DNA of 64,000 nt from NCBI GenBank assembly GCA_002269645.1, contig NIVC01000140.1, positions 124,001 through 188,000 of the forward strand. Reading direction: 5' to 3'. Below are positions 3,001 to 61,287 of this stretch, piece by piece (within the stretch, counting starts at the first letter, position 1; every line of letters starts with the position of its first letter). Below the pieces are notes generated by a model. It ran no database searches and was not told the origin of the DNA. It was given only the letters and a program-made list of their open reading frames with translations. The stretch comes from Macrostomum lignano (taxonomy: Eukaryota). Made by a program: the position numbers and the translations under genes.

Positions 3001-4257
3001 AATTCTCTTGGTGGGGCTATTGGGAGGTTATATGATTATCAAAACTGTCGATGAGATTACCGATATTGAGAGGTTGGATTATCTTGACTGACGGTGGAAT
3101 TATCGTGACTGACGGTGGGATTATCGTGACTGACGGTGGGCTTATTGTGACTGATGGTGGGATTATCGTGACTGACGGTGGGATTATTATGACTGACGGT
3201 GGGATTATCGTGACTGACGGTGGGATTATTATGACTGACAGTGGGATTATCGTGACTGACGGTGGGATTATCGTGACTGACGGTCGGCTTATCGTGACTG
3301 ACGGTGGGATTATTATGACTGACGGTGGGACTATTGTGACTGACGGTGGGATTATCGAGACTGACGGTGGGATTATCGTGACTGACGGTCGGCTTATCGT
3401 GACTGACGGTAGGATTATTGTGACTGACGGTGGAATTATCAAAACTGTCGATGAGTTTACCGATATTGAGAGGGTGGATTATCCTGACTGACGGTGGGAT
3501 TATTATGACTGACGGTGGGATTATCGTGACTGACGGTAGGATTATTATGACTGACGGTGGGATTATTGTGACTGACGGTGGAATTATCTTGACTGACGGT
3601 GGGATTATCGTGACTGACGGTGGGATTATCGTGACTGACGGTGGGATTATCGTGACTGACGGTGGGATTATCGAGGCTGACGGTGGGATTAGCGAGACTG
3701 ACAGGTTGGGATTATTGTGGAATTTTGTGGCTGGCAGGGTGGGATTATTGTGGAATTTTGTGGCTGGCAGGGTGGGATTATTGTGGAATTTTGTGGCTGG
3801 CAGGGTGGGATTATTGTGGATGGCAGGGTGGGATTCTGCTACAACTGATGATGGACGCCCGCCCCTCCCAAGCAGAGCCTCTTGGGACCCGGACGTACTG
3901 AATTCAGAGCTGGTGGAGATGATCGACGACAACTCGGATGTGACCCGCTTCACGCTGACGTCGCCACCCGCCCAGCCCGCCAGGGAGCAGTGCGTGCTGC
4001 GGGCCTGGCGCTCCGCCGGCTCCCACAGCCACTGCCTGTACACGGCCTCCGTGCGGCTGCCACCCACCCCTCTGACGCTGCCGACGCTGATCCTGAACGA
4101 AGACTGGCTGATCGAGGCCTGCGGGCCCGGCAACTCGCGGGTGACGCTGCTGTCCCGGGTGGACCTGCGCGGCCACAGCCTGGAATGGTACAACAGGACC
4201 TGGGGCCACAGCATCGCCAGGCAGCTCGTGCACCTCAAGAAGTCCTTCGCTGACTGA
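1..4257 (+). CDS. DLC1/STARD13: 3' part of a DLC1/STARD13/crossveinless-c family RhoGAP-START protein (5' end lies outside the window)
   Basis: Exons <1-309, 2657-2967 and 3876-4257 join in frame at GT-AG junctions (phase 0, phase 2). The RhoGAP C-terminus reads LLPDENREVLQSLLYFL...QMNASNLAVCLAPSLF. The START domain reads PLRLWK...WDPD...LIEACGPGNSRVTLLSRVDLRGHSLEWYNRTWGH...KKSF. Assignment is family-level only. Confidence 0.9.
1453..1845. repeat. Intronic minisatellite, ~30-bp unit (ttctctccgcttctttctgataatcccagc)
   Basis: Directly visible tandem copies in the 310-2656 intron of the RhoGAP gene. Confidence 0.9.
1855..2281. repeat. Intronic minisatellite, 48-bp unit (aagtgcatgtaatagtgtccaaatagatgggccagctataggggagca)
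   Basis: About 9 tandem copies. Confidence 0.9.
2280..2630. repeat. Intronic minisatellite, 52-bp unit (gggagatggcacgggagacctatgcaatctgaagctcggccccaatactgta)
   Basis: About 6.5 tandem copies ending ~26 nt before the acceptor at 2656. Confidence 0.9.
3035..3837. repeat. Compound intronic minisatellite: 21-bp unit (gactgacggtgggattatcgt) followed by a 33-bp unit
   Basis: Visible tandem copies in the 2968-3875 intron; these arrays generate the long repetitive ORFs in the track. Confidence 0.9.
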
Positions 4258-4817
4258 GGCTGCCGCCGCCGGCTACTCCGCATTTACATTTCGCCAGCGG
4301 GAGGCGCCTTTCTCACGTACCCCAACTCGTGTGCTGACTACTTACAGTAGGCTTGTGCTTGACTCTGGCACTCTGTAGCATAAACCAATCCAGACTTCTC
4401 AGTTTCCATGCGCTGCTTGCAATCTGTCTGCTTTACCTGTACACTTGTTGCGCAGCCCCTCTTCTCAGCCAGATCTTTCGTCTTTATCCTCTATTAGATT
4501 GTTCTCCCCTTCCCGTTTTATCCCGCCTCATCTACTTGAGTTTTCCCTCCCTTGCGCCCCATCGCTTTATTAAGAATTTCTCCCAGTTGCGCTGCAGGAA
4601 GTTCAGTTGTTCGAAAATAAAAAGGACGCAGGCTTTGCCAGTCTCAGTAACTCGTACTCAGCATGCGCTGCTCCAAGCTTAACTCAGCTTATCTGGGTGA
4701 CAACCGGCGCTGCGGGTGGCTGCGTTCGCCTTTCTCACTGAGCAGTTGAAAGCAGATTAAATCGATTCGGCGGTCATCAAATAGGAGCTTATTAACTGGA
4801 ATTGTAGCTAATATACC

Positions 4818-10155: not shown

Positions 10156-12780
10156 TCACTCGGCAGAGGCGCGCAGCGCAGGAGCTGCCGCCGAGCCCAG
10201 CAGCGACTGCGTCCCCGCGATGAGCTGCTCGATGCGCTTGGCCTGGCTCAGGAGGTCCTGCTGCATCGCAGCCGCTGTGGCCTCGGCTGCCTGCGCGGCC
10301 GCCACCTCCTCGCTGACGGAGGCATCCCGGCTGCGGCTGCGAAGCATCGGTGGCGGCGACGGCGACACCGGCGGCCTGCGGCGATAGTCGGCGGTGGCAA
10401 AGGCGGCCGACGGCTGCTGCGGTTGCGGCGACTCTTCGGAAGTCTGCAGGCGGCCCTGGACGAGGCGACCGCTGGTGACGCTCGCTGAGGTCTGCGGCGC
10501 CCAGTGGGCCTGGGCGGGTGGCGGCGGCGGCGGCTGTCCGTGAATCGAGGCTGCGACGGGCTGCTGCTGCTGCTGCAAAAGCGGAGGCGCCACGCCGTCA
10601 AGACGGGCCACTCGCTGCTCCAGCAGAGTGAGACGGGCGGCCAGGTCGGACACCTGCTGGGCCAGACCGCTAGCTAGCTCTGCTACTCGCTGCTCGGCCG
10701 CCCAAGGGCCCGTCTGTACCGCTCTGTTGGCCAGGCCGGGCGGCTCTGGGTGTAATGGCAAAATAGCTATGGACTCAATGGCAAAATGGCTATGGACTCA
10801 ATGGCAAAATAGCTATGGACTCAATGGCAAAATGGCTATGGACTCAATGGCAAAATGGCTATGGACTCAATGGCAAAGTGGCTATGGACTCAATGGCAGA
10901 ATGGCTATGGACTCAATGGCAAAGTGGCTATGGACTCAATGGCAAAGTGGCTATGGACTCAATGGCAAAATGGCTATGGACTCAATGGCAAAATGGCTAT
11001 GGACTCAATGGCAAAGTGGCTATGGACTCAATGGCAGAATGGCTATGGACTCAATGGCAAAATGGCTATGGACTCAATAGCAGAATGGCTATGGATTCAA
11101 TAGCAGAATGGCTATGGACTCAATAGCAGAATGGCTATGGATTCAATAGCAAAATGGCTATGGACTCAATAGCAGAATGGCTATGGATTCAATAGCAAAA
11201 TGGCTATAGACTCAATAGCAGAATGGCTATGGATTCAATAGCAAGGTGATTATGGACTCAATGGCAAAATGGCTATGGACTCAATAGCAGAATGGCTATG
11301 GACTCAATAGCAAAATGGCTATGGACTCAATAGCAGAATGGCTATGGACTCAATAGCAAAATGGCTATGGACTCAATAGCAAAATGGCTATGGACTCAAT
11401 AGCAAAATGGCTATGGACTCAATAGCCGGTTATGGACATTTCAACATGTCTGATGGACGAGCATTTTCCGGATTCCCGCCTATTGACACGGTTAGCACAG
11501 ATTTGTCGTCTAAAGACCACGCCATTGTGACCAGGCACTTCAACCACCCACTGTCGCTACAGGTCGGGCACGTTGCATGGATTGTGAGGGCCCGTACTAA
11601 CCTCGATTCAATGTGAGTTTTATTCCTGTGTTAGTTATCGACCCTTTACTCATTTCTATACTCAGCAATGCGCGGCCCATGAAGAACAGCGACAAGGCAA
11701 ACAATTTCCTGGGCGGGTAAGCCTGGCTGTCATGCAAACACAAAACAAATTATTTTAATACTAATTGCTCATCTAACTCATTCAAGAGCAGCTCACCATC
11801 CTCGGAGGCCAGCACAGTGGTGACAGGCACGGAGTAGCGGGCGGCCAAAGGGAAAGTGGCTGATGCCGCAGCATGGGAGGCTGCCGGAGCTCTCGGGCTG
11901 GCGCCGCAGCTGCTGGGGTGGCGGGGCTCGCGCACTACCTGAGCCCTGGGCGGCTGGGAGGCGGCGCCAGGCCCAGCCGCAGTGGCAGACCGTGGCCGGT
12001 CGCTCATCGCAGCGGAATTTGAGGGCGCCGTCTCAATGACTTCGACTTCACCGCTTGGCGCCGTCGCAGCTGCCGTGGCCGGCCGCTTGAGCCGCTGCGG
12101 GTCGAAGACGGACCGGTGGACGGCTGGTCGGCGCAGACGGGCCGCCAGCTCGCGGCCAAGGCGGCAGACATCCGCAACCAGAGCGGCCTTGCGGCTGGGG
12201 TAGCTTTGGCTGAGGAACTGGGCGCAGGTGACCGCAGGCCGGTAGCTCAGCTGGTCCCGCAGCACCAGGTACACGGTCTCCAGGAAACGACGCTCGTCCT
12301 TGCCAGCCAGCTCGTAGCCCAGCTTGTTGAGGTGGCCGGTGAGGGCTGGGCTGAAGTCGCAGAACAGGTGGCGCAGCACGGACACCAGATCTGAGTGGGC
12401 CCCCTTGGCAAGGCTGCAAGTGCGGGGAAAGGATTCCGCCATGAGAGTATGTGGACCTACAGACAGGACTCAGTCATGAGAACCTGTAGAGACAGACAGG
12501 ACTCAGTCATGAGAATCTGTAGACAGACAGGACTCAGTCATGAGAAACTGTAGAGACAGACAGGACTCAGTCATGAGAAAATGTAGGACGGGATTTCAGT
12601 GGCAGAGAGTAAATATTTTTATTTCAATAACATGTGAAGCAGGAAGGCAGGCAAAAATTCGCACCCATGATAGTCAATGGAGCCTGGAAACTTGACTCTT
12701 CGGACCTCCTGCTGCAGACAGTCGAGGCTGTTCTTCAGGTCTGCATTGGAGACAGTCACGCTGCTGCTTCCACCTTTCAT
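10156..12780 (-). CDS. CEP44: Centrosomal protein of 44 kDa
   Basis: Exons 12780-12665, 12413-11797 and 10745-10156 join in frame (phase 2, phase 1). The N-terminal domain DLKNSLDCLQQEVRRVKFPGSIDYHGLAKG...ELAGKDERRFLETVYLVLRDQLSYRPAVTCAQF matches the CEP44 pattern, followed by a low-complexity linker and coiled-coil segments. Confidence 0.88.
10753..11425. repeat. Intronic minisatellite, 23-bp unit (ggctatggactcaatggcaaaat)
   Basis: About 29 tandem copies in CEP44 intron 2, running almost up to the acceptor AG at 10747-10746. Confidence 0.92.
12452..12585. repeat. Short 31-33-bp tandem repeat (agacagacaggactcagtcatgag...)
   Basis: Four copies in CEP44 intron 1. Confidence 0.8.
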
Positions 12781-34984: not shown

Positions 34985-37410
<2,426 letters not shown>

Positions 37411-39405
37411 GATGAGTTTTTCAGTACTTAAATGTGATTTAACAGAACTTGAGAATCACAGCAATATCTTGAGACAGTTGTTGAGGCGAATGATTAAAAG
37501 TCTGTGGTATATATGCAAAAATTGAACCGAGATTCTGACAGCAAGAACAAAGTAGATCTATACCAATAAAAACATTTTACATTTAATTTTTTAAATTAGA
37601 AAACTTTTAAAATTATTATAACATATTTTAATGTTCATTCTGAGTCTACTGTAAATCTTGAATAAAAGTTTTTGTTAAAATCTACAGCAGAACAAGATTG
37701 GTATTTTAAATTTATGAAGCGTTTTTCCACGATTGAGGCTCTTTCTATAACTATGACGGCGAAAAATTCATTGTTCTTTTTTAAACAAGTAATACTAGCT
37801 CAAGGAAAGCATTATAGTCTAGATCCAACGAGCTAATTCATAACCCCAAATCCAATGAAATGCTGCCTACAATATCAACACACCTTATATAGGTATAGGC
37901 TGCCATTGTTATCAATGACAATGATACAAAACTTATAAAAGAGAAATAAATTTTATAACTTTTTACTTTATTATTTTAATTGAATTATATAGTTCATATG
38001 TATTGGATTAGTCCATACTCTATACACAGTCTATAATATACAATGTTATTATTATTATATTTTTAAACAGTGGCAGCACAGCACCTCCAATTAGGGGGTG
38101 GGGGCAGGGGTTGGGTGGTCAACCCCCATGCCCCCTACCCCTACAAGAAAAAAAATTTTCTTGTGGCCTTGCGCATACTTTCAGATTTTTTTGTTAAAGG
38201 GGTGGTCACCCAGGAGCTACAGCCGCTCTCCCTGCCCCTTTGTAACATGTCTAACTTAGCTTGTCTATCTTTATCAAGGTGTCATTAATTAGTAATGACT
38301 ATTATGATAAGGCTTGAGTAGCCTTTGTAAAGTTTATAATTAAATTTGACCAAGCTATATTACAGATGACAAGGCTACTTATTAATTATTATTATTAATG
38401 TATAATAATATTAATATTAGTAATATTAATGTAATGTATGTAATATATGAATTTTCTTGCATAGAAGTTTTTGTTTCAAACATAATCAATGTAGTATATA
38501 AGTATAACATTTTTATATTCATTATTCATTTTTGATGTAAACCATTATTAATAGTGCTATTTTAGTATTTATTTAAAATAATAATCCAACATAGCATATA
38601 TTTAAACTAAAGACTAAATGATTATTTATTAGCTTTAAAAATTATTTAACATTTAGTTCCCAAATAGAGACTATTTTAGTATTATGAATATATATATATA
38701 TATATATAATAAACTAAAAATAGCATTAAAATTAATGATAGGCCCTATAAAAACATTTTCTTTTTAAAATGTACATGGCATACAGCATTAGGCTAGAATT
38801 CTTAGAAAGCCAATAAAAAATTGGGGCTGGATAGGGTAGTATGAAAAGGCAGGGTTAGAAGATTTAAGCTGGGATAAAAGTCAATAAATGAGCCTTGACT
38901 TAAAAAATAAATTAAAATGCTTCTATTTAACTTACTACTAAACTAAAAGTAGAATACGCACAAATGTGCTAAGTGGCTCATCTAGTTATTCTAGTATCGA
39001 TGGTTTTAATTAGGCAATATACTCGTAATCATAGGCAATGGGATCTTGTGGCACTGGGGATATGTGCCCAGTGCCCCCCTTGAAAATGAGTCCACGTGGT
39101 AATTTTTTAGGCCATAATTAACAGCTTATAAAGGTACCTATGCCCCCCTTGCCCTGTGCCCAGTGTCCCCCCTAAAATATTAGGCTCCGCCACCCCTGCT
39201 CTTAATGGCTATATGCAACTTTTTTCGTTTAGCTCTCAGTTAACAAGCCCTTTAATTTTTAGATATAGCAAAGGCATCTAATCCCTTTGCTTTTGTTGAA
39301 AATATCCTATTTGATATACATGAGTAACATATGCTGGAAACATTGATTTGTCTGACTTATTCTAATGGCTTTATCACTTTCTGAAAAGTTTTATACCTAT
39401 ACATA

Positions 39406-39719
39406 GGGGTTTATAGCCTAGTGGTTCGAGCATTGGACTCTTGACTGAAAGTTTGGGGGTTAGATTCTCAACCTTCTCAAAACAGTTTGTGTCCTTGAGC
39501 AAGGCACTTAATTCTGCATTGCATATGCATAGTTCACCCACCTGTAAAATGGGTACCAGCATTAGCTGGGATGATTGAGGGTGTGTGTGATGACCCCCAG
39601 TCCTTGGACTGAAAAGCTGTATGCAGCCTTTACTCGTAGATGCGCCGCTCAATAGCTGTGGCTGAGCTGTCAGCTGCACATGTGCACAATAGGGCAATAG
39701 TAATTAGTTATTATTATTA
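39406..39719 (+). mobile_element. tRNA-derived SINE with a CORE-like central domain
   Basis: A-box tagcctagtgg (~39414), degenerate B-box ggttagattc (~39458), gtgtccttgagcaaggcacttaa and ctgtaaaatggg resembling the MIR/CORE consensus from memory, and a (tta)n tail. Confidence 0.6.
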
Positions 39720-39874
39720 CGAGCGTATTATCATGTACCTATGCTAAAAGTGAATATAAGAAAAAGCAAGGGTAGTCTAGCAAAAGAATGCTGACCAAAT
39801 GATTTGATCAAACGCAACCCACCAATCAAATCCGCATTGGTTTCAGACTGTCAGCCCTACTGGCAATAAACGCC

Positions 39875-42800
39875 ATGAAGTTTTCAACCCGGGAGATGGT
39901 TTTTTCTGCTATCCGCAGTCACACTGGCAAGTCAGGCGCATCTCTGATGGCCATTAAAAAGTACATCATCGAGCACTTTATGCTGGCCATAGACAGGAGG
40001 CTGGCGGGCCGCATCCGCTCGATTTTGAGGAACTCGGTCATTAATGGCACGTTGGTGAGGGTTGGTGGCCGGGGCCGCGGCGCTTGCGGCTCCTTCAGGC
40101 TGTCCAGAGGTAGTGCGGGCCCAGCTGGACCGGCCGCCAGGTCGAGCAGGCCGGCCTCGACCGCCCGCAAGTTCGGACCCATCCCGGAACCAAAGTCAAG
40201 CATTTCTTCTGAAGGGTTGGTCATTTTACATTAGTTTTGGAGCCATTTTTGTTTCCTGATATCGCCTTCTGAATTTCAACAAATCATGGTTTATTTACTC
40301 AGTGTAATTTTTCCTGGGTCTTTGCTCCGTGATCTACCCGAATATTAATAATCTTAAACCGGAATCAGAGCCCATCGAGCAAGACTTCAGGTTCTTAAAT
40401 TACTGTTCGTCTCGGAATCGCATTATTGAATCGATTGATTCACTCATTTCGTGCTAACTTCTATATCGAAGCAGCACCATCCAAGCATCATCCTGTCACC
40501 ATCACCCTCTCACCATCACCCTGTCACCATCACCCTGTCACCATCACCCTATCACCATCACCCTGTCACCATCACCCTATCACCATCACCCTGTCACCAT
40601 CACCCTGTCACCATCACCCTATCACCATCACCCTATCACCATCACCCTATCACCATCACCCTGTCACCATCACCCTATCACCATCACCCTATCACCCTCA
40701 CCCTGTCACCATCACCCTGTCACCATCACAGTCGTTAAACTCCCTGCTGTCAGTATATCATACAAGGTGTACATATAAATCATAACCCATGGTTCGCAGA
40801 GGCGGTCGAGACCCCTCTGAACAGCTGCCGCAGGCGCTGATGATCCGCATTCTGTCCGAGCTGGACCAGCCCAGTCGCATGCAGTGCGCCCTTGTGAGCC
40901 GCGCCTGGCACGAGCTGGTCATGCAGCCGCTGGTGTGGCGCCGACTGCACCTCTACTACGACTGTCTCGGTAAGCCCGGCGTGGCATCACGGCTGTCTCG
41001 CTGGCTGTCTCCGACTTTGGTTCAGGTGGTGTCAGATGGCTCCATCGATCTGAACATTGTTCTGGCCGACTGTCCCAGGCTGCAGCTGCTGACGCTGCGC
41101 TCTGAGCACTGCGAATACTACGCTGAGGGCAACCCGCTGATTGCAGCCGTCAAAGGCTGTCCGCGTCTACGCTGCCTCCGCGTGCTCGACTGCGACAGCT
41201 TGCTGACACCGGACACGCTGTCCGGCCTGCTGACCGGTTGCCCGCGCCTTGACCACCTAGAGCTCGACGATGAGCGCAAGCTGTTCCTGAGCTCGACGGT
41301 GTTCTCCGACGCAGCTGCCTGCGCGCAGCCGTTCTGCAAGCTGCTGGCCCGTCTGACTTCGCTGAGACTCCCGAATTTCTTAGAAAGCTCGCGGCCCGTG
41401 GCTGCCGCCGTGTCGGAGAACTGGCCTAACTGCACCAACCTGGTGTGTCTGGACGTGGCCTCCGCTACGGAATCCAGTGAGTCTTGCTGCGATTGCGCCT
41501 ACATTGGGCTTTTTGCACTGCTAGCACAGGCAGGCAGCGAGCTTCAACTTCGGATTCTCATATTCGCCCGCAGACCTGCTGGCTGCAATCAGCGGCCTGC
41601 CGAGCCTACAGGAGCTGTCTGAGAGGCTGCTTGCCATTACTGATCAGCTGGCTGCCAGCGGAATTCCAGCTGCTGTTCGCCGTAGCAGCTGCCGCCTACG
41701 CAGCCTGCAGCTGGAGCAGTGCAGCCCCCTATCAGCCAGGGGCCTCCGAGCTCTGCTCACCGCCTGGCCGGGACTGCTGAGCTTCCGACTGAGAAACTGC
41801 CAGCAACTGGGCGCCGAGGGCTACTTGCTGGCTACCGGGGTGGCCACCCTGACTGAGCTGGAGCTAACTGGCCCCGCCTGGCCGGGTCTCAGGGACGCTG
41901 ACTTGGCCAGCCAGCCCCTGCCGTCAGGTCTGAAGAAGCTGCTGTTGAGCTCCAACGGCTGGCCGTTCGGTGTCACCGGCCTGGGACTGCGGGCTGGCTT
42001 GGCCACCTGCCGGGGTGAGCAGCGGGCTGGAGTGGCTGCGCAGCCTACAGAACAGCAGGCTGTAGGGTTAGGGGAGATACAGAATAACAGCAGGCTGTAG
42101 GGGTAGGGGAGCTACAGAATAACAGCAGGCTGTAGGGGTAGGGGAGCTACAGAATAACAGCAGGCTGTAGGGGTAGGGGAGCTACAGAATAACAGCAGGC
42201 TGTAGGGGTAGGGGAGCTACAGAATAACAGCAGGCTGTAGGGGTAGGGGAGCTACAGAATAACAGCAGGCTGTAGGGGTAGGGGAGCTACAGAATAACAG
42301 CAGGCTGTAGGGGTAGGGGAGCTACAGAAGAACTGCAGGCTGTAGGGGTAGGGGAGCTACAGAAGAACTGCAGGCTGTAGGGGTAGGGGAGCTACAGAAG
42401 AACAGCAGGCTGTAGGGGTAGGGGAGCTACAGAAGAACTGCAGGCTGTAGGGGTAGGGGAGCTAGAGAAGAACAGCAGGCTGTAGGGGTAGGGGAGCTAG
42501 AGAAGAACAGCAGGCTGTAGGGGTAGGGGAGCTAGAGAAGAACAGCAGGCTGTAGGGGTAGGGGAGCTAGAGAAGAACAGCAGGCTGTAGGGGTAGGGGA
42601 GCTACAGAAGAACTGCAGGCTGTAGGGGTAGGGGAGCTACAGAAGAACTGCAGGCTGTAGGGGTAGGGGAGCTAGAGAAGAACAGCAGGCTGTAGGGGTA
42701 GGGGAGCTACAGAATAACAGCAGGCTGTAGGGGTAGGGGAGCTACAGAAGAACTGCAGGCTGTAGGGGTAGGGGAGCTACAGAAGAACAGCAGGCTGTAG

Positions 42801-43695
42801 GGGTAGGGGAGCTACAGTAGAAGAGCAGACTGTAGGGGTAGGGGAGCTACAGAAGAACAGCAGGCTGTAGGGGTAGGGGAGCTACAGAAGAACAGCAGGC
42901 TGTAGGGGTAGGGGAGCTACAGTAGAAGAGCAGACTGTAGGGGTAGGGGAGCTACAGAAAAACTGCAGCTGTAGGGGTAGGGGAGCTACAGAAGAAGAGC
43001 AGGCTGTAGGGGTAGGGGAGCTACAGAAGAACTGCAGGCTGTAGGGGTAGGGGAGCTACAGTAGAAGAGCAGACTGTAGGGGTGAGGTAGCTGAATACAT
43101 CAAGCTTCAAACTGTTATTAATGACCTTAAAGACAGCGGACTGACGAACGCGTTGAGTAAAATGGCTGAATAACTTTCTGTTTGCGGAGCTCCAATGCAC
43201 AGATCAGTAATAAAACTTATTCCACTTTGATGCCCAGGCCTGACCCACCTGACCGTCGATCTGCCCTGCCATGACGAGCTGCTGCCGGCTCTGCTCACCC
43301 AGCTGCCCCGCCTGCGCTGCCTTCGCCTGGCCGACTGCAGCGGTTTGACCTCCCGGGCCTGGCAGGGCCTGTCAAATCTGCGGATCCCGGCGGACTCGTG
43401 GCCGGATCTACACGAGCTGCATCTGCACCAGTGCCGCAGCCTCACTGATGAGGCGCTGGCCAACTTGTGCGACACTCCGGCTGTCAGGGGACTGCGCCAC
43501 CTCGAGCTGCACTCCAGCCGCCTGCTGGGCCCGGTGGCACTGCCCATGATCGCTGAGGCCTGTCCCTGGCTGGCTGTGCTGGAGCTGAAGAACTGCCGGA
43601 TGCACGCGGCCTGGCTCGCAGTCATGTTCACCCGCGACCCGCATATGTTCGGCTTCCACCGGACCCAGATCCGCCTGTCTGCCGGGGACTACTAA
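39875..43695 (+). CDS. Putative linker-histone H1 globular domain + F-box + leucine-rich-repeat protein (638 aa)
   Basis: Exons 39875-40215, 40800-41476, 41574-42014 and 43238-43695 total 1917 nt, all GT-AG and phase-compatible (2,1,1). H15-like region: EMVFSAIRS...GASLMAIKKYIIEHF...GRGACGSFRL. F-box: LPQALMIRILSELDQPSRMQCALVSRAWHEL. LRRs: CPRLRCLRVLDC, LPRLRCLRLADCSGLT, LRHLELHS. The first splice is the least certain; the alternative is two genes with the F-box gene starting at ATG 40789. Confidence 0.7.
40488..40730. repeat. 14-bp minisatellite (caccatcaccctgt)
   Basis: Tandem copies between the H1-like and F-box exons. Confidence 0.9.
42035..43085. repeat. 35-bp G-rich minisatellite (agctacagaataacagcaggctgtaggggtagggg)
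   Basis: About 30 copies in intron 3 of the F-box/LRR gene. Confidence 0.93.
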
Positions 43696-43754
43696 TAATA
43701 TTGACTTTAGTTGTTAACCTAAATACCTGCCGAAATGGAAGTTGAAAATCAGTA

Positions 43755-44308
43755 GCTGAGTTCAGTGAGTATCGGCTCTGCTGAGTTTAGTGAGTATCGG
43801 CTCTGCTGAGTTCAGTGAGTATCGGCTCTGCTGAGTTCAGTGAGTATCGGCTCTGCTGAGTTCAGTGAGTATCGGCTCTGCTGAGTTCAGTGAGTATCGG
43901 CTCTGCTGAGTTCAGTGAGTATCGGCTCTGCTGAGTTCAGTGTCGGCTCTGCTGAGTTCAGTGAGCTCTGCTGAGTTCAGTGAGTATCGGCTCTGCTGAG
44001 TTCAGTGAGTATCGGCTCTGCTGAGTTCAGTGAGTATCGGCTCTGCTGAGTTCAGTGAGTATCGGCTCTGCTGAGTTCAGTGAGTATCGGCTCTGCTGAG
44101 TTCAGTGAGTATCGGCTCTGCTGAGTTCAGTGAGTATCGGCTCTGCTGAGTTCAGTGAGTATCGGCTCTGCTGAGTTCAGTGTCGGCTCTGCTGAGTTCA
44201 GTGAGCTCTGCTGAGTTCAGTGAGCTCTGCTGAGTTCAGTGAGTATCGGCTCTGCTGAGTTCAGTGAGTATCGGCTCTGCTGAGTTCAGTGAATATCGGC
44301 TCTGCTGT
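43755..44308. repeat. 25-bp minisatellite (gctgagttcagtgagtatcggctct)
   Basis: Tandem copies just downstream of the F-box/LRR stop codon. Confidence 0.93.
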
Positions 44309-45084
44309 CCATTTTGATGCTGCTTAAATTTTGCATATTAAACTGTGCAAACCTACTGTAATTTTATTCAAACATATTTATTGCTGCCTGTTAAATCCGC
44401 GCCTGTCTGTTTGACAGCGCAGACTCAAGTTGCATTTTGCCTGGCGCTGTAGCCAATTATTTACACTTTTCCACCTTTTTCACTATTTAGCATTTTCCTG
44501 CTGTTTTTCTTCCATTTTTGTCTCTTCAGTGAGAGAATGGCCGCTAAATAGAAAGTCAATGCAGGGTGTGTTTTGTTTGAAACAGATCACTTTGCTTTGT
44601 TGCTACAAGCTCGTAAGAAAAAAATCTCCAAAATTGCTGTCGTTTTGCGATATTGATGTGCAGCCCGTAATTTTACGCTGCCCAGGACCCGCTTTATTGC
44701 ATCCTTTTGCGTTGTTTAATATACCAAAGCATTGCACTGCATTGAGAAGTTTTCCTCTTGCATTTGGTCCTCCATCTGGCGACAATGTTACCTTTGCTTA
44801 AATTTAAACTGATGATCAGCATGCCACGAAGGGGGGCAAGGGAAGGTAGGGGAGACTCGCAAAAGTACATGACTACCCTTACATTGTAGCTTTCGGACCC
44901 AGTGAAATACAGTGGCACTTTTCTCAGGCTAACAAAATTCTATATGCGAGGGTACTGTGAGAAACCTAGAAGCGTGCCTTGTTTACGGTTTAACAGTAGG
45001 AATGCTCTCAAGTCGCCAGCCCTCCGGACCGTCGATATATTCAACGATTCTGCCAGAATTTCGAAATCTTTCCATAAGCGCCAC

Positions 45085-45298
45085 TGTATTCAACACACTC
45101 CTGTGCGCCCGTGTATTCAACACACTCCTGTGCGCCCGTGTATTCAACACACTCCTGTGCGCCAGTGTATTCAACACACTCCTGTGCGCCAGTGTATTCA
45201 ACACACTCCTGTGCGCCAGTGTATTCAACACACTCCTGTGCGCCAGTGTATTCAACACACTCCTGTGCGCCAGTGTATTCAACACACTCCTGTGCGCC
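45085..45298. repeat. 27-bp minisatellite (gtattcaacacactcctgtgcgcca..)
   Basis: About 8 tandem copies. Confidence 0.9.
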
Positions 45299-45709
45299 AA
45301 TCAGCCAATTCAGTCTGCCACGTCGTCTGCATCAGCTCTGATGAAGCTTCTGAATCTTCAGGTTTGCCCGCTGTAGAGGCTTGACCAGCTAAATGAACAG
45401 TCGCAACAGGGTGTCCATAGTAAAGTGCGATATTGAATTTTTGGGATGTCCGAAGTTATACTGCGCTGTGAGATTTCACGAGAAGAAAGAAATTGAAAAC
45501 AACTGCAATTAAGGAGTAAGACAGGCACATGTCGGTTTTCTAAGTTATTTCAATTTCTCATAGACCCTAAACAGGAAGACAATTGTTGACTCTGACAATT
45601 AAACCAATATTAAAATACCATTTTTGTCCGAAATCTGGCTGTTACTAAAAAATTGACTTTTCCGGACTTCTGATCGTAGCGAATAATTTTTCCTGAAAAA
45701 TGGCTGCTG

Positions 45710-47125
45710 CTCTCCTGCAGGCAAGATCTTTATTGGCTATTGAGGAGGCTTTAGCTCTCCTGCAGGCAAGATCTTTATTAGCTATTGAGGAGGCTTTAGC
45801 TCTCCTGCAGGCAAGATCTTTATTAGCTATTGAGGAGGCTTTAGCTCTCCTGCAGGCAAGATCTTTATTAGCTATTGAGGAGGCTTTAGCTCTCCTGCAG
45901 GCAAGATCTTTATTAGCTATTGAGGAGGCTTAGCTCTCCTGCAGGCAAGATCTTTATTAGCTATTGAGGAGGCTTTAGCTCTCCTGCAGGCAAGATCTTT
46001 ATTGGCTATTGAGGAGGCTTTAGCTCTCCTGCAGGCAAGATCTTTATTAGCTATTGAGGAGGCTTTAGCTCTCCTGCAGGCAAGATCTTTATTAGCTATT
46101 GAGGAGGCTTTAGCTCTCCTGCAGGCAAGATCTTTATTAGCTATTGAGGAGGCAGTAGCTCTCCTGCAGGCAAGATCTTTATTAGCTATTGAGGAGGCTT
46201 TAGCTCTCCTGCAGGCAAGATCTTTATTAGCTATTGAGGAGGCTTTAGCTCTCCTGCAGGCAAGATCTTTATTAGCTATTGAGGAGGCTTTAGCTCTCCT
46301 GCAGGCAAGATCTTTATTAGCTATTGAGGAGGCTTTAGCTCTCCTGCAGGCAAGATCTTTATTAGCTATTGAGGAGGCTTTAGCTCTCCTGCAGGCAAGA
46401 TCTTTATTAGCTATTGAGGAGGCTTAGCTCTCCTGCAGGCAAGATCTTTATTGGCTATTGAGGAGGCTTTAGCTCTCCTGCAGGCAAGATCTTTATTGGC
46501 TATTAAGGAGGCTTTAGCTCTCCTGCAGGCAAGATCTTTATTGGCTATTGAGGAGGCTTTAGCTCTCCTGCAGGCAAGATCTTTATTGGCTATTGAGGAG
46601 GCTTTAGCTCTCCTGCAGGCAAGATCTTTATTGGCTATTGAGGAGGCTTTAGCTCTCCTGCAGGCAAGATCTTTATTGGCTATTGAGGAGGCTTTAGCTC
46701 TCCTGCAGGCAAGATCTTTATTGGCTATTGAGGAGGCTTAGCTCTCCTGCAGGCAAGATCTTTATTAGCTATTGAGGAGGCTTTAGCTCTCCTGCAGGCA
46801 AGATCTTTATTAGCTATTGAGGAGGCTTTAGCTCTCCTGCAGGCAAGATCTTTATTAGCTATTGAGGAGGCTTAGCTCTCCTGCAGGCAAGATCTTTATT
46901 GGCTATTGAGGAGGCTTTAGCTCTCCTGCAGGCAAGATCTTTATTGGCTATTAAGGAGGCTTTAGCTCTCCTGCAGGCAAGATCTTTATTGGCTATTGAG
47001 GAGGCTTTAGCTCTCCTGCAGGCAAGATCTTTATTGGCTATTGAGGAGGCTTTAGCTCTCCTGCAGGCAAGATCTTTATTAGCTATTGAGGAGGCTTTAG
47101 CTCTCCTGCAGGCAAGATCTTTATT
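45710..47125. repeat. 45-bp minisatellite (gctctcctgcaggcaagatctttattagctattgaggaggcttta)
   Basis: About 31 highly homogeneous copies with occasional 44-bp variants. Confidence 0.95.
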
Positions 47126-47456
47126 ATCTACGAGCTACTTATCTACAGGCAACACCAGGGGCGCCAGCACAGGGAAGAAACAGTGATCCCAATTTCCAAT
47201 AAAAAATATCTGCTCTGGTGAAATAAATTGAATATTGAAACCTATTGAGTTGATGAAGCACTGATTCAACACACTAGTTTTCACTGGCTTAGAAGGTTGC
47301 TTCCATATAAGGTCAGTCCAGAGGCTATTAAGAGGCCCAAGATTTGGGCTTGGTGGAGTTGCAGGTGGCGCCAGGTGACTATGGGCACCCTGTTGTCCCC
47401 CCCCCCGTAGTTCTACGAGTACTGTTAGAGTTTTCTGTGTAAGCCGAGGTAGATCC

Positions 47457-47839
47457 TGACGTGACGCGAAAGTCAGGAATCGAATGTTGTTTGAACGAAT
47501 ATAAATTCTTGCGATATATTTGCAGTAGTAGAATAGTCTAAGTTGCTTGACGAGACACAGATCGAGAGCAATGGTTTAAATATTGCGACTATTGAAAATA
47601 TTGAAGTGGAGTATTGAACTATATTGATGCACTGCATGATTGAGCAAGTGGAGGGACTTAAGGGGCGAGGCAAGGCTAGAGCAATGATGTACACTGAATT
47701 GCACAGAGTACGCATTCGTTTACAGAGTACATAGAAGTTTAGCATTGAATAAAGTTAAGTGACTGAGTTAGCAGAATAAAGTTAAGCAAAAAACCGCACA
47801 CAGTTACCCATGCTAGCAAACCAACGAACCGTCACTTCA
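47457..47839 (-). repeat. 3' LTR (383 bp)
   Basis: No difference from 51716-52098 seen by eye. Confidence 0.95.
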
Positions 47840-50800
47840 TCTCCCCCCTTCGAATCGAGCTGGCGGCAGGCCCCTTGTCGAACGAACCGGATAGCGAGGC
47901 AGCTTCACCGGCGAGAGGCCGGCGGTCGGCTGCGGCCGATGCAACTCGGTAGCCTCCCCGCCCTGCAGTCCGGTGATTTCACCGTCCTCAGCGGCTGCAG
48001 TAGCGGTGTCGCTGCCACTGCTGCTCACGTCACCTTGGCAGCTGGTTTGCGGCAGCATCGTATACTCGTCCGTGGCGCGGGAGGTTGCCGGATCATCGGC
48101 TCCGGCCTCGATGCGTTCACTCAGCTGGTCTGCATGCGCCAGGACGGTGCGACCGCCTTGGCGGGCGATGATGGCCGTGTTCGTCCCTTTCTGACATAGA
48201 AACTCGGCCGGCTCGCGCTCCAGCCCTGCGCCCGGTGCGTACCAGATGTTGGCTCTAATTGGCGTCTTCATTGTGATAGGATTGCGAAGCTGCCGTCCCA
48301 TGAGCTGTGCTGGACTTTGGGCCCGACCGGCGTGGGGAATGCACCTGTAATTGAGTAGGAGTCTGAACAGGAATGAGTCGTACGGCTCCGACGCTTGGTC
48401 CCAGGCCGCCGACGCCCTCTTGATCGAGCCAACCATCCGCTCCGCAAGTCCGTTCGATTGCGGATGCCTTGGAGGAGTTTTGAGGGCTCGACAGCCAATT
48501 CGCTCAAGCCAGGACAGCAGTCCAGCGTCGTGATACTCAGCGGCATTATCGCTAACCAGGACGTGCGGGACACCGTTTCTAGCGAATACTGACTGAAGAG
48601 CGGCCTTAACAGTCGCAGCATCGCGGTTTGGTACTCTCAGGACCTCAGGCCATCCCGACATTGCATCGACTAGAATGAGCACCAGTCCAACCTTCGGGAT
48701 TGTGGCGTGGTCCATATGCACGCGATGCCACGGTTCGTCTTCCTTTGGCCACTGATGTACCGTAGGTGTGCCGGAAGGCCGAATTCGCGTGCAGGTGGGG
48801 CAGTTGCGCACGTGCCGCTCCACATCCGTGCAATATCCTGGCCACCAGGCCGAGTTGCGGATGAGTGCGCGAGTTGCCATGGCTCCCTGATGCGAGTCAT
48901 TGTGTACCTGATCCAGGACGCGCTGCCTGAGTGTCGCAGGAATCACCGGTCGATCGCCGTAGCAGAGAATGCCGTCGTCTATCACTAAGGCATGGCGAAC
49001 TGACTTGTACGGTCTCTCAGCTGGGGAGCATCCTGACCATCTGCTTGATGCGACTCGCTCAGCAATATCTTGGAGTAGACGATCGCGCTGGGTCTCTGCT
49101 TGCAGCTCCACCCATGGAATCACCGGGCTGCCAGCCCAATGAACCAGACCTTCCAAGGCAGCAGGTTCTGATTCGGATAGTTCACCGTCGCATTCAAGGC
49201 GAGAGAGAGCATCAGCGTGTGGAATGTGCTCGCCTTTTGTGTAGATCGTGTCAAAATCGAAGGCCATTAGCTTGATCGCCCAGCGAAGTAGCCGAGCGTT
49301 CGCCACCTTTGGAAGTTGCCGCCGCGCTCCGAAGAGAAACTCTAGAGGCCGATGATCTGTCCGTAGAGTGAATCGGGCACCGAGAAGGAACTGCTTGGCG
49401 CGTTCCATCGCCCAAACGATGGCGAGGGCTTCTCTTTCGATATTCGAATAGCGCGACTCCGTGCTGCTCAACCGTCTGCTAAGGTATATAACCGGGTGGC
49501 CGTTTTGGGTGAGCACAGCGGCGATGGCCCTCTCACTGGCATCTGTGGTAAGAGTCGTCTCTTTGGTCTTGTCGTAGGGCTGTAGGACTGGCGCACTGCT
49601 AAGAATGGCTTTGATTCTCTCGAAGGCCTGAGTCTGATCGGGTCCCCAACTGAACCTTGCGTTCTTGGTTCGTAACCGGTTGAGTGGCTCGATGATCTGT
49701 GAGTAGTTGCGAATGAATCTGCCAAAAAAGTTGGCAAGGCCAAGAAAAGATTCTAGTTGCTTCTTGTCTCCAGGAGTCTTGACGGCGCGGATCCGATCGA
49801 CCAGATTTGGATCAGGAGAAATTCCTCTCTCGCTGACTCTGTACCCGAGAAATGAGACCTCCCTAGCCTTGAGGGTTGATTTTTCCAAGTTGATTGACAT
49901 TCCTGCCTTCTTTAGGGTAGCTATGACATTTTGGACCTTTGAGTCGATCTCTGAGTCAGACTTTCCGCCGAGAAGAATGTCGTCCTGATAAACTATCTTG
50001 CCGGTGATGTCGGCAAGGACTGATTCCATTGCCTTTTGAAAGATAGATGATGCTGATTTGAGGCCTGGAACGAGACGCTTATAGCGATAGAGGCCCAAAG
50101 GTGTGGCGATGGTGGTGATCTCTCTGCTGTCTTCGTCCAGCTCTATCTGTAAATAAGCATCTGAAAGGTCGATTTTCGAGAAGTGCGACATTCCAGAGGT
50201 CTCCGCAAAGATTGTCTCCATCTCAGGCATCGGGTACGTATCGTTGCACACCTGATGATTAACTCCTGCTTTGAAGTCAGCACAGACGCGCACCTTTCCG
50301 TTAGGTTTCAGCACGCTGACAATTGGTGAGGCCCACTGACTCCCTCCGGCTGGAACAGGCTCGATTATCTGCTCAGCCTCCATTCGCCCGAGCTCCTCGT
50401 TAACCCGGTCTCGCAGGTGAATTGGGACGGGCCTAGCTGCGCAGTAAAACGGTTTTGCTCCATCAACAAGGCGAATCTTGGCTTTGAAGTTTTTGAGACA
50501 ACTTTTTTTGAGTTGGCCGACAGCGTTGATTGTAATAGCGTCCCCTTGCAGCTTGATGACGTCCATTCCCAGCAGTCCATGTGGTTTGCTGGCCTCCGTG
50601 ACGATTAAGTCCAGTGTGACAAAGTTGGTGTCGGTTTCTAGGGAGGCAGTGAATTCTCCTAGACAGGAAATGCTGGATCCGTCGTACTGCCTGAGTGTTC
50701 GCCTGCACTTCCTGAGAGAAGGGCGGCCGAGCTTGACCCACAGATTTTGCGGAAGTAGACTCACCTCGGCGCCCGTGTCAATCTGCATAGGCAGGGTCCG

Positions 50801-51715
50801 ACCATTGATCTTCGCCTCGTGAAAGACTCCGTTGCTACGCCCGGGAGTGACCACAAAAATGTCGGCTGGCCCTTGGTCCTGATTCTCATGATCGCCTGTC
50901 GATTCTCCTTGGGTCAAGTGCACTTCTCTGGATCTGCAGACCGCAGCAAAATGATTCTTCCGTTTACACTTGGTGCACCTCTGACCAAAAGCGGGGCAAC
51001 TGCCTTTGGGGTGAGTTGTACCGCAGTAATAGCACCTGCCTTTACCAGCTGCTCCTGGAGACTTGGCTGCTGCACCAGTCGTTCTTGGTTGCCCTGCAAA
51101 AGCGATCTCCAGGGGGACGGGCGCGCCTGATGAAGCGCTGTTGGTTGTGCCTTTGTTATATTGTTGAATTTGCTCGAGCTGCTGCAGGTTTTGCAGGATA
51201 TCATCAAGAAGTTTTTCTTCGCCTTGAAGCTGCTCCAAAATTCTCTTCTTGTGTTCGGGAGAGGCAAGGCCGTCGATTAGTCTCATCGCGATGAGGTCGT
51301 TTTCCTTGGACTGCTTGGCCCCAAGTTCCTCGAATTCGCAAAGCGCCGCCGCTGCTCGAAGCCGACGATAGTAAGTGCTGATCGATTCACCTGGCTCTTG
51401 CTTCAGGCTTAGAAATCTGGTGCGCTCAGCGATGACCAGCCTTTTCTTAGGCCGGATTGTTGCTGTTACTAGTGTCTCGATTTCGCTAAATTTGAGTGCC
51501 TCCAGCTTTTTTGGTGCAGCCATCAGAGAGAGCGTCCGGATCGCCTGTAGTCCAGCCTTGGACAGGAACAAGTCAGTCTTATCCCGCGCTTCGTCCGTGT
51601 CCGTAAGTTTCTTAATGCGGGCTGTGGCGGAGAGCTGCTGCATCCATGCCTCAGCGAGTTCAGGATCGTTGAGGTTGAGTTCTTGACTCCGAATTTCGCC
51701 TGCTTGCGACGCCAT
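47837..51715 (-). CDS. Gag-Pol polyprotein (1292 aa)
   Basis: Single intact ORF with Cys-His knuckles CYYCGTTHPKGSCPAFGQRCTKCKRKNHFAAVC, protease DTGA, RT YQDD, RNase H LTTDAS, and integrase HHCC plus DDE core (HMDHA, VSDNA, GLAERMV) in Gypsy order. Confidence 0.97.
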   Translation of the reverse strand: MASQAGEIRSQELNLNDPELAEAWMQQLSATARIKKLTDTDEARDKTDLFLSKAGLQAIRTLSLMAAPKKLEALKFSEIETLVTATIRPKKRLVIAERTRFLSLKQEPGESISTYYRRLRAAAALCEFEELGAKQSKENDLIAMRLIDGLASPEHKKRILEQLQGEEKLLDDILQNLQQLEQIQQYNKGTTNSASSGAPVPLEIAFAGQPRTTGAAAKSPGAAGKGRCYYCGTTHPKGSCPAFGQRCTKCKRKNHFAAVCRSREVHLTQGESTGDHENQDQGPADIFVVTPGRSNGVFHEAKINGRTLPMQIDTGAEVSLLPQNLWVKLGRPSLRKCRRTLRQYDGSSISCLGEFTASLETDTNFVTLDLIVTEASKPHGLLGMDVIKLQGDAITINAVGQLKKSCLKNFKAKIRLVDGAKPFYCAARPVPIHLRDRVNEELGRMEAEQIIEPVPAGGSQWASPIVSVLKPNGKVRVCADFKAGVNHQVCNDTYPMPEMETIFAETSGMSHFSKIDLSDAYLQIELDEDSREITTIATPLGLYRYKRLVPGLKSASSIFQKAMESVLADITGKIVYQDDILLGGKSDSEIDSKVQNVIATLKKAGMSINLEKSTLKAREVSFLGYRVSERGISPDPNLVDRIRAVKTPGDKKQLESFLGLANFFGRFIRNYSQIIEPLNRLRTKNARFSWGPDQTQAFERIKAILSSAPVLQPYDKTKETTLTTDASERAIAAVLTQNGHPVIYLSRRLSSTESRYSNIEREALAIVWAMERAKQFLLGARFTLRTDHRPLEFLFGARRQLPKVANARLLRWAIKLMAFDFDTIYTKGEHIPHADALSRLECDGELSESEPAALEGLVHWAGSPVIPWVELQAETQRDRLLQDIAERVASSRWSGCSPAERPYKSVRHALVIDDGILCYGDRPVIPATLRQRVLDQVHNDSHQGAMATRALIRNSAWWPGYCTDVERHVRNCPTCTRIRPSGTPTVHQWPKEDEPWHRVHMDHATIPKVGLVLILVDAMSGWPEVLRVPNRDAATVKAALQSVFARNGVPHVLVSDNAAEYHDAGLLSWLERIGCRALKTPPRHPQSNGLAERMVGSIKRASAAWDQASEPYDSFLFRLLLNYRCIPHAGRAQSPAQLMGRQLRNPITMKTPIRANIWYAPGAGLEREPAEFLCQKGTNTAIIARQGGRTVLAHADQLSERIEAGADDPATSRATDEYTMLPQTSCQGDVSSSGSDTATAAAEDGEITGLQGGEATELHRPQPTAGLSPVKLPRYPVRSTRGLPPARFEGGR

Positions 51716-52657: not shown

Positions 52658-52749
52658 TGCGCAGTTTTACAGCAACTGCAAAGGCGTATCGGTTTGCCGA
52701 GCTCGAACTTAGCATAGTTATCAAAATTTAGTTGTCACCCAGCAACCAA

Positions 52750-53226
52750 ATGGCATCCTCCGTGATTCTCCTGATCGGCGCGGCCTTGGTTCTGACCGTG
52801 TCAGGCCTGCGCTGCCCGCAGCTGGACCCGGAGTCTGTGTGCTCCGCGGCCAGAGAGGGCTTCAAGTACAACGACGGCTGCAACGGGGTGGAGTGCACAG
52901 GCAGCGGGCAGTACACCACTACCATGCGCTGGTGCCCGCGGCCGCAGTCTGCCGAGGAGCGCCGTGAGTGCCGCGGCAGGGCGTCCGCCATCTTCGAGCG
53001 GCTGGGCCCGTTCTCCTGCAGCAACCTGGAGGCCGCCAGCGTCTGCAGTCGTCGCGGCAGCGTCTTCAGTTACTTCGACGGCTGCAACCGGGTCACTTGC
53101 GAGGCTGACGGCGGCTACACTAGCTCGTTCCGGATGTGCCCGCAGGCCGATGCCGAGGGCGCCTACTGCCAGTTCATGGAGTCCCGCCTGGGCGAGGCTG
53201 CTCGGCGGAGGAGGCGTCGCCGCTAG
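52750..53226 (+). CDS. Secreted Cys-rich protein with two pacifastin-like repeats (158 aa)
   Basis: Signal peptide MASSVILLIGAALVLTVSG and two internal repeats C..G.F...DGCN.V.C...G.YT....CP. Single exon with upstream TATAAA and downstream AATAAA at 53293. Confidence 0.75.
   Translation: MASSVILLIGAALVLTVSGLRCPQLDPESVCSAAREGFKYNDGCNGVECTGSGQYTTTMRWCPRPQSAEERRECRGRASAIFERLGPFSCSNLEAASVCSRRGSVFSYFDGCNRVTCEADGGYTSSFRMCPQADAEGAYCQFMESRLGEAARRRRRRR

Positions 53227-57102: not shown

Positions 57103-61287
<4,185 letters not shown>

Follow-up and report, generated by a model that had tools for sequence, protein, structure and literature searches.

A 64,000-nucleotide window of Macrostomum lignano contig NIVC01000140.1 contains, on its forward strand at 39875–43695, a gene that joins a linker-histone globular domain (H15, or GH1) to an F-box and a leucine-rich repeat (LRR) solenoid. 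Its four exons join into 1917 nt, an open reading frame (ORF) of 638 residues without internal stops; every intron border reads GT..AG, and the product runs in the order H15 domain, linker, F-box, LRR solenoid. The same coding sequence (CDS) is the deposited GenBank product of the locus, so the join is more than a chance match of splice phases. We hold with high confidence that this structure, an H15 exon joined to F-box/LRR exons, is correct. To judge from the sequence searches, M. lignano appears to be alone in combining these domains, within the data covered. For the whole, the best explanation is a real chimeric gene, so far seen in M. lignano only, whose product would place a Skp1–Cul1–F-box (SCF) ubiquitin ligase on chromatin; we regard its chances as evenly balanced.

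The gene and its relatives

The donor of intron 1, AGG/GTTGGT at 40215/40216, is in phase 2, and its acceptor, GTTCGCAG/A at 40799/40800, is phase-compatible, the split codon GG/A reading as glycine. A sequence-only reading of this stretch had named both sites and the clean four-exon frame, and splicing and translating the exons bears them out. Left unspliced, the H15 ORF (39875–40234, forward strand, 119 residues) ends at an in-frame stop, 40232–40234, within intron 1. The F-box/LRR part has a stand-alone ORF of 528 residues from an ATG at 40789, within the last 11 nt of the intron; this ATG is probably incidental. The gap between the two parts holds the minisatellite that the same reading described (17.4 copies of a 14-mer, 40486–40729). 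It had also seen no AATAAA after the H15 stop: a scan of 40235–40800 found neither AATAAA nor ATTAAA, and TATAAA alone, at 40774. This TATAAA lies 15 nt upstream of ATG 40789, in intron 1, and may serve either as a variant signal for polyadenylation or as the TATA-like element of an alternative, H15-less transcript.

The window locus is the NIVC01000140.1 locus itself: all nine tested stretches (38800–43695 minus the repeat cores) are 100% identical. When the spliced CDS is begun at 39848, 27 nt further 5′, its translation equals PAA89724.1 (BOX15_Mlig027362g1) exactly, an entry labelled 'hypothetical protein'; the deposited CDS has an open 5′ end and nine residues more than a start at ATG 39875 gives. 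A homology search with the 638-residue product returned three M. lignano proteins: BOX15_Mlig022843g1 (a partial 'hypothetical protein' with 99% identity over 100% coverage, carrying PF00538, PF00646, and PF12937), and the UniProt entries A0A1I8F2G2 (named 'F-box domain-containing protein') and A0A1I8JRN1, both ML2-based and both carrying the join. A search with exon 1 alone gave no match and missed even its own protein, hence it is not counted as evidence.

The 90% cluster comprises three GenBank proteins on three scaffolds of GCA_002269645.1 (Mlig_3_7). The two further, near-identical loci, Mlig022843g1 and Mlig024235g1, have the same four exons and identical splice-site sequences. Intron lengths vary across the three loci with the number of minisatellite copies: 584, 943, and 654 nt for intron 1, and 1223, 944, and 490 nt for intron 3. 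Minisatellites fill the introns and untranslated regions (UTRs) of this gene, and their copy number differs between the paralogous loci.

The Mlig_3_7 annotation was assembled from RNA-seq alignments (STAR, StringTie, TACO) and a mapped de novo transcriptome (PMC5730564). Because it was built from RNA-seq and not ab initio, the deposited, in-phase GT..AG junction rests on spliced alignments. TBONE cuts transcriptional units at peaks of spliced leader (SL) or poly(A) reads, and TransDecoder calls ORFs afterwards (PMC5730564). There is no cut between the H15 and F-box parts, which implies that no SL or poly(A) peak was detected there. The pipeline does split neighbours: A0A1I8F616 (ML2/UniProt) merges an Rpb3/Rpb11-type domain with an F-box paralogue, where GenBank has two genes. 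That entry is a case of operon read-through mistaken for fusion in M. lignano annotation. The GenBank genes at its locus (NIVC01001673.1) lie in one transcriptional unit, the F-box gene being 'g3'. An origin of the H15/F-box join in the pipeline's 'merge across repeats' step was considered and rejected; that rule covers only ORF-less downstream transcripts, and it also would not give exact, in-phase GT..AG borders.

The mRNA is probably SL trans-spliced at 39846/39847, as indicated by a putative acceptor (Table 1) that fits the M. lignano SL trans-splice acceptor motif, YTNCAG (PMC8629364). The Mlig022843g1 copy reads TTTCTGA where the window and the third copy have TTTCAGA (window 39840–39847), without the acceptor AG. 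In its place stands an in-frame TGA, immediately 5′ of the annotated start, and yet the CDS of this copy is still 5′-partial from the same base. This suggests that the same transcripts, mapped to more than one locus, shaped all three deposited models.

A second line of support comes from F-box/LRR paralogues of M. lignano (Mlig001195, Mlig030928, A0A1I8HG30, A0A1I8GB72, and others), which share the F-box signature LSELDQ.S...CA..SR.W and a C-terminal block. In a phmmer search with residues 1–191 against 1.84 billion (1.84e9) representative proteins, six of the 150 best matches listed were F-box-only, and all six were M. lignano proteins. The aligned paralogues show 29–34% identity over the shared stretches, which for Mlig001195g2 and A0A1I8HG30 span the whole F-box/LRR part, and 29 columns are invariant; Pfam scans found no H15 in them.

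Gene models of Mlig001195g2 and Mlig030928g3 were rebuilt on their GenBank loci, with introns 2 and 3 compared for Mlig001195g2. The latter, 34% identical to the H15 gene, follows the same four-exon plan. Its introns 2 (IEFS/A) and 3 (ACRS/T), both phase 1, fall at the same aligned residues as those of the H15 gene (ATES/N and ATCR/G, also phase 1). Intron 1 lies 8 1/3 codons before the 'LP' of the F-box in the H15 gene (phase 2, acceptor GTTCGCAG); 9 codons before it in Mlig001195g2 (phase 0, acceptor ACTCGCAG, donor GTGAGT); and 11 codons before it in Mlig030928g3 (phase 0, acceptor TCCCGCAG, donor GTAAGA). Relative to 'LP', the H15 gene's intron is therefore 2–8 nt from the paralogues' position, and all three acceptors read ..CGCAG. 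Since the paralogues share introns 2 and 3 and have an intron 9–11 codons before the F-box, the junction at 40799/40800 is an inherited cis-splice acceptor. The splice proposed in the sequence-only reading thus stands, on the deposited model at three loci and on the shared acceptor. The gene model itself is not new; it was already deposited, unnamed.

Judging by these gene models, the F-box exon in this family is never the first coding exon, and the H15 exon takes the place of the paralogues' short, variable first coding exon. In Mlig001195g2 and Mlig030928g3, exon 1 has an ATG of its own, codes for a short peptide unrelated to H15, and ends at a strong donor before a phase-0 intron, whereas the H15 gene has the H15 exon 1, a weak GTTGGT donor, and a phase-2 intron. 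The most economical account of its origin is that the first exon was replaced or extended by H1-derived sequence. The Ala/Pro/Ser/Arg-rich residues 79–114 may be a remnant of an H1 tail. No H15 ORF was found within 8 kb upstream of Mlig001195g2, and no second H15 copy was found in the window. Homology between the linker (residues 78–122) and the paralogues' exon-1 peptides was entertained for an [ST]xRPxS motif seen by eye, and dropped when BLASTP gave no alignment.

Table 1. The H15–F-box/LRR gene in window coordinates
Feature	Position	Strand	Details
Putative SL acceptor, TTTCAG	39841..39846	+	Fits YTNCAG; directly 5′ of the deposited CDS start, 39848
Exon 1, coding part	39875..40215	+	ATG 39875; 341 nt; ends at phase-2 donor
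H15/GH1 winged helix, residues 4–77	39884–40105	+	Pfam match, exon 1
Disordered Ala/Pro/Ser/Arg-rich linker, residues 79–114	exon 1, after H15	+	AlphaFold2 model
Intron 1, 584 nt, phase 2	40216..40799	+	Donor GTTGGT, acceptor CGCAG
Exon 2, F-box (~40819–40953) and first LRRs	40800..41476	+	Pfam; FBXL2 match in the PDB
Intron 2, 97 nt, phase 1	41477..41573	+	Splice borders, GTGAGT..CAG
Exon 3, LRRs	41574..42014	+	Spliced ORF, AlphaFold2 model
Intron 3, 1223 nt, phase 1	42015..43237	+	Splice borders; repeat scan: 35-bp minisatellite inside, 29.6 copies, 42049–43083
Exon 4, C-terminal LRRs and stop	43238..43695	+	Spliced ORF; TAA 43693–43695; best-conserved block across the paralogue family
Inferred 3′ UTR	43696..44342	+	25-bp minisatellite just past the stop codon, 23 copies, 43755–44307; first ATTAAA after the stop at 44337

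The H15 domain, the F-box, and their pairing

Pfam, the check recommended for both domains, assigns residues 4–77 to Linker_histone (PF00538; 54.4 bits, E 1.5e-14, cut-off 22.4), and recognizes the F-box both as F-box-like (PF12937; 43.7 bits, cut-off 24.3) and as F-box (PF00646; 30.3 bits, cut-off 20.5). The closest sequence matches of the H15 part in the PDB are H1.0, H5, H1.4, and HP1BP3, with a best E of 7e-07 (H1.0 and H5). A full-length AlphaFold2 (AF2) model rendered both H15 and F-box poorly, its alignment being shallow, and the H15 part was remodelled with a 40-sequence H1 alignment. The new model reaches a predicted local distance difference test score (pLDDT) above 90 over residues 1–60, with helices at 5–15, 24–35, and 41–57 and a hairpin at 60–63 and 73–76; residues 79–114 are disordered. 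In a Foldseek comparison with the PDB, the first 17 matches are linker-histone globular domains (H5/H1.0/H1.4/H1.10), mostly in nucleosome complexes, with template-modelling (TM) scores of 0.72–0.88 and root-mean-square deviations of 1.6–3.7 Å; forkhead domains rank next. The globular domains of H5, H1.0, and H1.4 superpose on the model at 1.6–2.3 Å, and the GSFRL wing motif is kept.

An isolated H1 globular domain can recognize the nucleosome dyad together with linker DNA. DNA-contact positions of the H5 globular domain (GH5), in the standard residue numbering, were read off a HMMER alignment. GH5 residues K69, R73, and K85 are kept basic as R48, R52, and R66, and residues R42, K52, R94, and K97 as K19, K29, R75, and R78. 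Over residues 1–80, 16 Lys and Arg stand against 3 Asp and Glu. With most basic contact positions kept, the H15 domain is predicted to bind the dyad.

Unlike H1 and H5, the protein has essentially no N-terminal tail, and, as the sequence-only reading noted of the H15 ORF, no Lys-rich C-terminal tail: only two Lys occur in the 40 residues 81–120. For want of that tail, the protein is a carrier of H15 and not a linker histone. The retained contacts are Arg, with two exceptions. The whole protein is poor in Lys (13, versus 58 Arg, in 638 residues), nearly all linker-histone DNA-contact Lys being replaced by Arg. This poverty may reflect GC-rich coding (third-position GC content 0.78), or may limit auto-ubiquitylation of an F-box protein.

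The F-box motif is canonical, LP..L..IL..L....C..VS..W.......LW. In the PDB, the F-box/LRR part finds FBXL2 (E 3.2e-13, with the F-box aligned) and FBXL17. Residues 162–634 are modelled by AF2 at pLDDT 75–90 as alternating strand/helix repeats with about 18 strands, and there are about 17–18 cysteine-containing LRRs of the FBXL type. Foldseek matches this fold to FBXL2-SKP1, TIR1, COI1, D3/MAX2, and ribonuclease inhibitor; Pfam LRR models give sub-cut-off scores only. A Pfam scan of the 638-residue protein found Linker_histone, F-box, and weak LRR matches only, and no CXXC, PHD, or JmjC domain.

Like FBXL2, FBXL17, TIR1, COI1, and D3/MAX2, the protein places its F-box before a long, cysteine-containing LRR solenoid; in repeat number it is nearer to TIR1 than to FBXL2. 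Its identity with any solved structure is only 15–20%, no orthology to a named FBXL is detectable, and the proteins nearest to it are the M. lignano paralogues. No FBXL protein was found with an H15 domain, whereas this one carries it.

The sequence-only reading did not know this architecture from characterized proteins, and neither the phmmer search nor a search of the literature supplied another example. Among the 150 best matches listed, only the M. lignano cluster matched both domains (106 bits). The next matches, at 60–71 bits over several stretches, are multi-H15 proteins, and the rest are H1-like proteins or M. lignano F-box paralogues. Pfam scans of 10 and 28 longer matches found no F-box next to an H15; a one-query phmmer would miss very divergent F-boxes. 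Of the papers found to name both domains, none is concerned with an H15 plus F-box protein, as judged by title and abstract.

Outside the histones, H15/GH1 serves as a chromatin-targeting module in the plant GH1-Myb (TRB) and GH1-HMGA proteins and in animal HP1BP3, as documented for the plant proteins (PMC11287191, PMC8195489). These proteins pair it with Myb/SANT, AT-hooks, or additional H15 copies, none of them a ubiquitin-ligase adaptor.

Chromatin tethering and its rivals

These features suggest a model for the fused protein. The predicted F-box would dock on Skp1-Cul1-Rbx1, as family knowledge leads one to expect; a functional SKP1 is reported for M. lignano (PMC9740662). The LRR arc would bind substrate. 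The H15 domain would compete with H1 and keep the ligase at the nucleosome dyad or on linker DNA, and ubiquitylation would be confined to chromatin-bound targets.

KDM2A (FBXL11), KDM2B (FBXL10), and FBXL19 make it plausible, by analogy, that an SCF receptor is tethered to chromatin. These proteins work on chromatin, at CpG islands (PMC3524939, PMC5997449, PMC5499583, PMC3685328), and likewise carry a chromatin or DNA module N-terminal to the F-box; they are the closest functional analogy. Their modules are a ZF-CxxC domain, which reads unmethylated CpG, and a PHD, with a JmjC demethylase besides in KDM2A and KDM2B. The M. lignano protein instead has a linker-histone winged helix, expected to read nucleosome dyad and linker DNA and not sequence. 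Beyond the F-box/LRR part there is no sequence relationship, and the likeness is one of design, not of membership. A DNA or chromatin module on an FBXL protein is therefore a known concept, and it is the pairing with H15 that was not found elsewhere in the data covered.

A bolder version would make this the first ubiquitin-ligase substrate receptor to read the nucleosome through a linker-histone globular domain. Here SCF(H15-FBXL), the product of a recent exon-1 replacement, would replace H1 at the dyad. Its targets would be H1, core histones, or chromatin proteins nearby, ubiquitylated for instance while chromatin is remodelled in flatworm stem cells or in spermiogenesis. We regard this version as possible but doubtful.

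Several observations weigh against the best explanation. The intron 1 donor, GTTGGT, deviates from the M. lignano consensus GT[G/A]AG (PMC8629364), so the intron may frequently be retained; retention would give the H15-only ORF of 119 residues that stops at 40234. Translation could, in principle, also begin at ATG 40789 and give an F-box protein that lacks H15. For junction use, isoform ratios, and SL or poly(A) signals at the locus, the deposited model is the only and an indirect source. The ML2 annotation over-merges neighbours, and because it did so at A0A1I8F616, the ML2-based A0A1I8F2G2 and A0A1I8JRN1 lend little independent weight. Searches of full texts and of the supplements of Grudniewska 2018 for the three gene IDs gave neither expression data nor a phenotype. 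Among the 150 best matches listed from the 1.84e9 representatives, none was an orthologue from outside M. lignano. Within the protein, the F-box is modelled at low confidence (shallow alignment), five basic GH5 positions are lost (K40 to T, R47 to L, K55 to I, K59 to M, and R74 to N), and the H15 wing is two residues longer.

Divergence among the three copies gives no clear purifying signal. Each pair differs at 12–16 coding positions, of which 4–6 are synonymous and 8–10 non-synonymous, and the Nei-Gojobori method yields dS of 0.008–0.012, dN of 0.006–0.007, and omega of 0.48–0.73; these substitutions are too few to show selection. Non-repeat intron segments are 97–100% identical between copies.

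The rival that survives best accepts the fusion and denies its H15 domain a role in chromatin tethering. H15 would then be a young passenger, brought in by near-neutral exon-1 replacement in a fast-evolving family and present in three copies through recent polyploidy; the product would be at most an ordinary, soluble SCF receptor. Among the matches listed, the fusion occurs only in M. lignano, and the F-box proteins nearest to it are all M. lignano paralogues that lack H15. The omega values are indistinguishable from neutrality, the 98–100% identity of the three loci, introns included, is expected of the duplicated DV1 genome (PMC5730564), and the weak donor and the loss of some canonical basic residues point the same way. 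Yet the H15 ORF is intact in all three copies, with residues 1–80 identical in each; the domain lies well above the Pfam threshold, with a confident fold; and its main DNA-contact positions are still basic. Moreover, the domain is about 31–41% identical to the aligned H1s and at most 46% identical to any H15 match among the 150 best listed, so that, far from being newly copied from a canonical H1, it has lasted long enough to diverge without decay. On balance this reading is unlikely.

A second rival holds that the H15 ORF (119 residues) and the F-box/LRR ORF (528 residues) are mainly separate products, made from an internal promoter or by an operon-like pair that polyadenylation and SL trans-splicing would resolve. 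The fused mRNA would then be a minor isoform, from read-through or mis-splicing, that the annotation chanced to retain. Operons are numerous in M. lignano, and their intergenic spacers are repeat-rich and below 1 kb (PMC8629364), and the distance from the H15 stop to ATG 40789 is 555 nt, 244 nt of it minisatellite. One F-box paralogue stands third in a transcriptional unit, and the older annotation wrongly merged it with its neighbour. The weak intron 1 donor, a G at position +4 of ATG 40789, and a YTNCAG motif inside intron 1 (40385) also favour separation. However, the CDS stayed in one piece at each of the three loci in a pipeline that cuts at SL and poly(A) sites. The paralogues do not begin at exon 2 but carry a coding exon before it, with an intron at the corresponding position, so exon 2 is not naturally the first. 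The last six bases of intron 1, TCGCAG, do not fit YTNCAG, and a canonical poly(A) signal is missing after the H15 stop. As the main route to a separate F-box mRNA, SL trans-splicing at 40800 was rejected: it would delete ATG 40789 and leave the SL ATG out of frame, meeting a stop after six codons, and the next in-frame Met (M18 of the 528-residue ORF) lies inside the F-box, past 'LP'. We judge separate products improbable.

Least probable is that the protein is bound to chromatin and works independently of SCF, as an LRR scaffold that recruits other factors or as a competitor or decoy of H1, its F-box being structural only: there are precedents in KDM2B and FBXL19, which largely recruit PRC1.1, CDK-Mediator, or RNF20 to DNA and are not classical degraders (PMC3524939, PMC5997449, PMC5499583), and in the GH1-Myb (TRB) proteins, whose GH1 brings PRC2 and JMJ14 to chromatin (PMC11287191), but the F-box here follows the canonical pattern, scores clearly in Pfam, and has Skp1-bound FBXL2 as its best solved relative, and nothing in the sequence suggests that Skp1 binding has been lost.

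F-box proteins are notorious for domain shuffling, which weighs against the significance of one more combination. With the fusion confined to one species as far as seen, the finding is a good curiosity and not the answer to an open question. Nevertheless, if H15 does tether the ligase, the protein would be a natural SCF receptor whose guide to chromatin is nucleosome shape, and neither histone marks nor DNA sequence. Such a receptor would be a complement to FBXL19 and the KDM2 proteins, which rely on CxxC, and would supply a ready template for degraders aimed at chromatin. In addition, the locus shows, cleanly and datably, how the replacement of a first exon leads to a new domain architecture within a lineage-specific F-box expansion. 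Since RNA interference and transgenesis are available in M. lignano, the idea is directly testable.

Surroundings in the window

Divergently upstream of the H15 exon lies a Sec61-alpha gene (SecY, Plug_translocon; 34985–37410, reverse strand). The same neighbour, on the opposite strand, is present at all three fusion loci; the whole block was therefore duplicated. Farther upstream are two tandem, closely similar genes for amiloride-sensitive sodium channels (ASC/DEG-ENaC, PF00858; 25834–28492 and 31310–33454, forward strand), each spread over several ORFs, and an ORF with a CEP44 centrosomal-protein domain (11750–12442, reverse strand; 79 bits).

Downstream, an uninterrupted ORF of 1292 residues (47837–51715, reverse strand) has aspartyl protease, reverse transcriptase, RNase H, and integrase domains, and apparently encodes an intact polyprotein of a Ty3/gypsy-type long terminal repeat (LTR) retrotransposon. 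Beyond it, a Cys-rich ORF of 164 residues (52732–53226, forward strand) consists of two similar halves, with a hydrophobic, signal-peptide-like start and a sub-threshold match to Pacifastin-inhibitor (21 bits).

The window is unusually rich in long minisatellites (1440–4283, 10628–11080, 45078–47130, and 58429–59529). The array at 45078–47130 includes 8 copies of a 27-mer (45078–45299) and 31.7 copies of a 45-mer (45709–47130), and long periodic ORFs arise from repeats at 58429–59529, 3017–4283, and 1440–1853.

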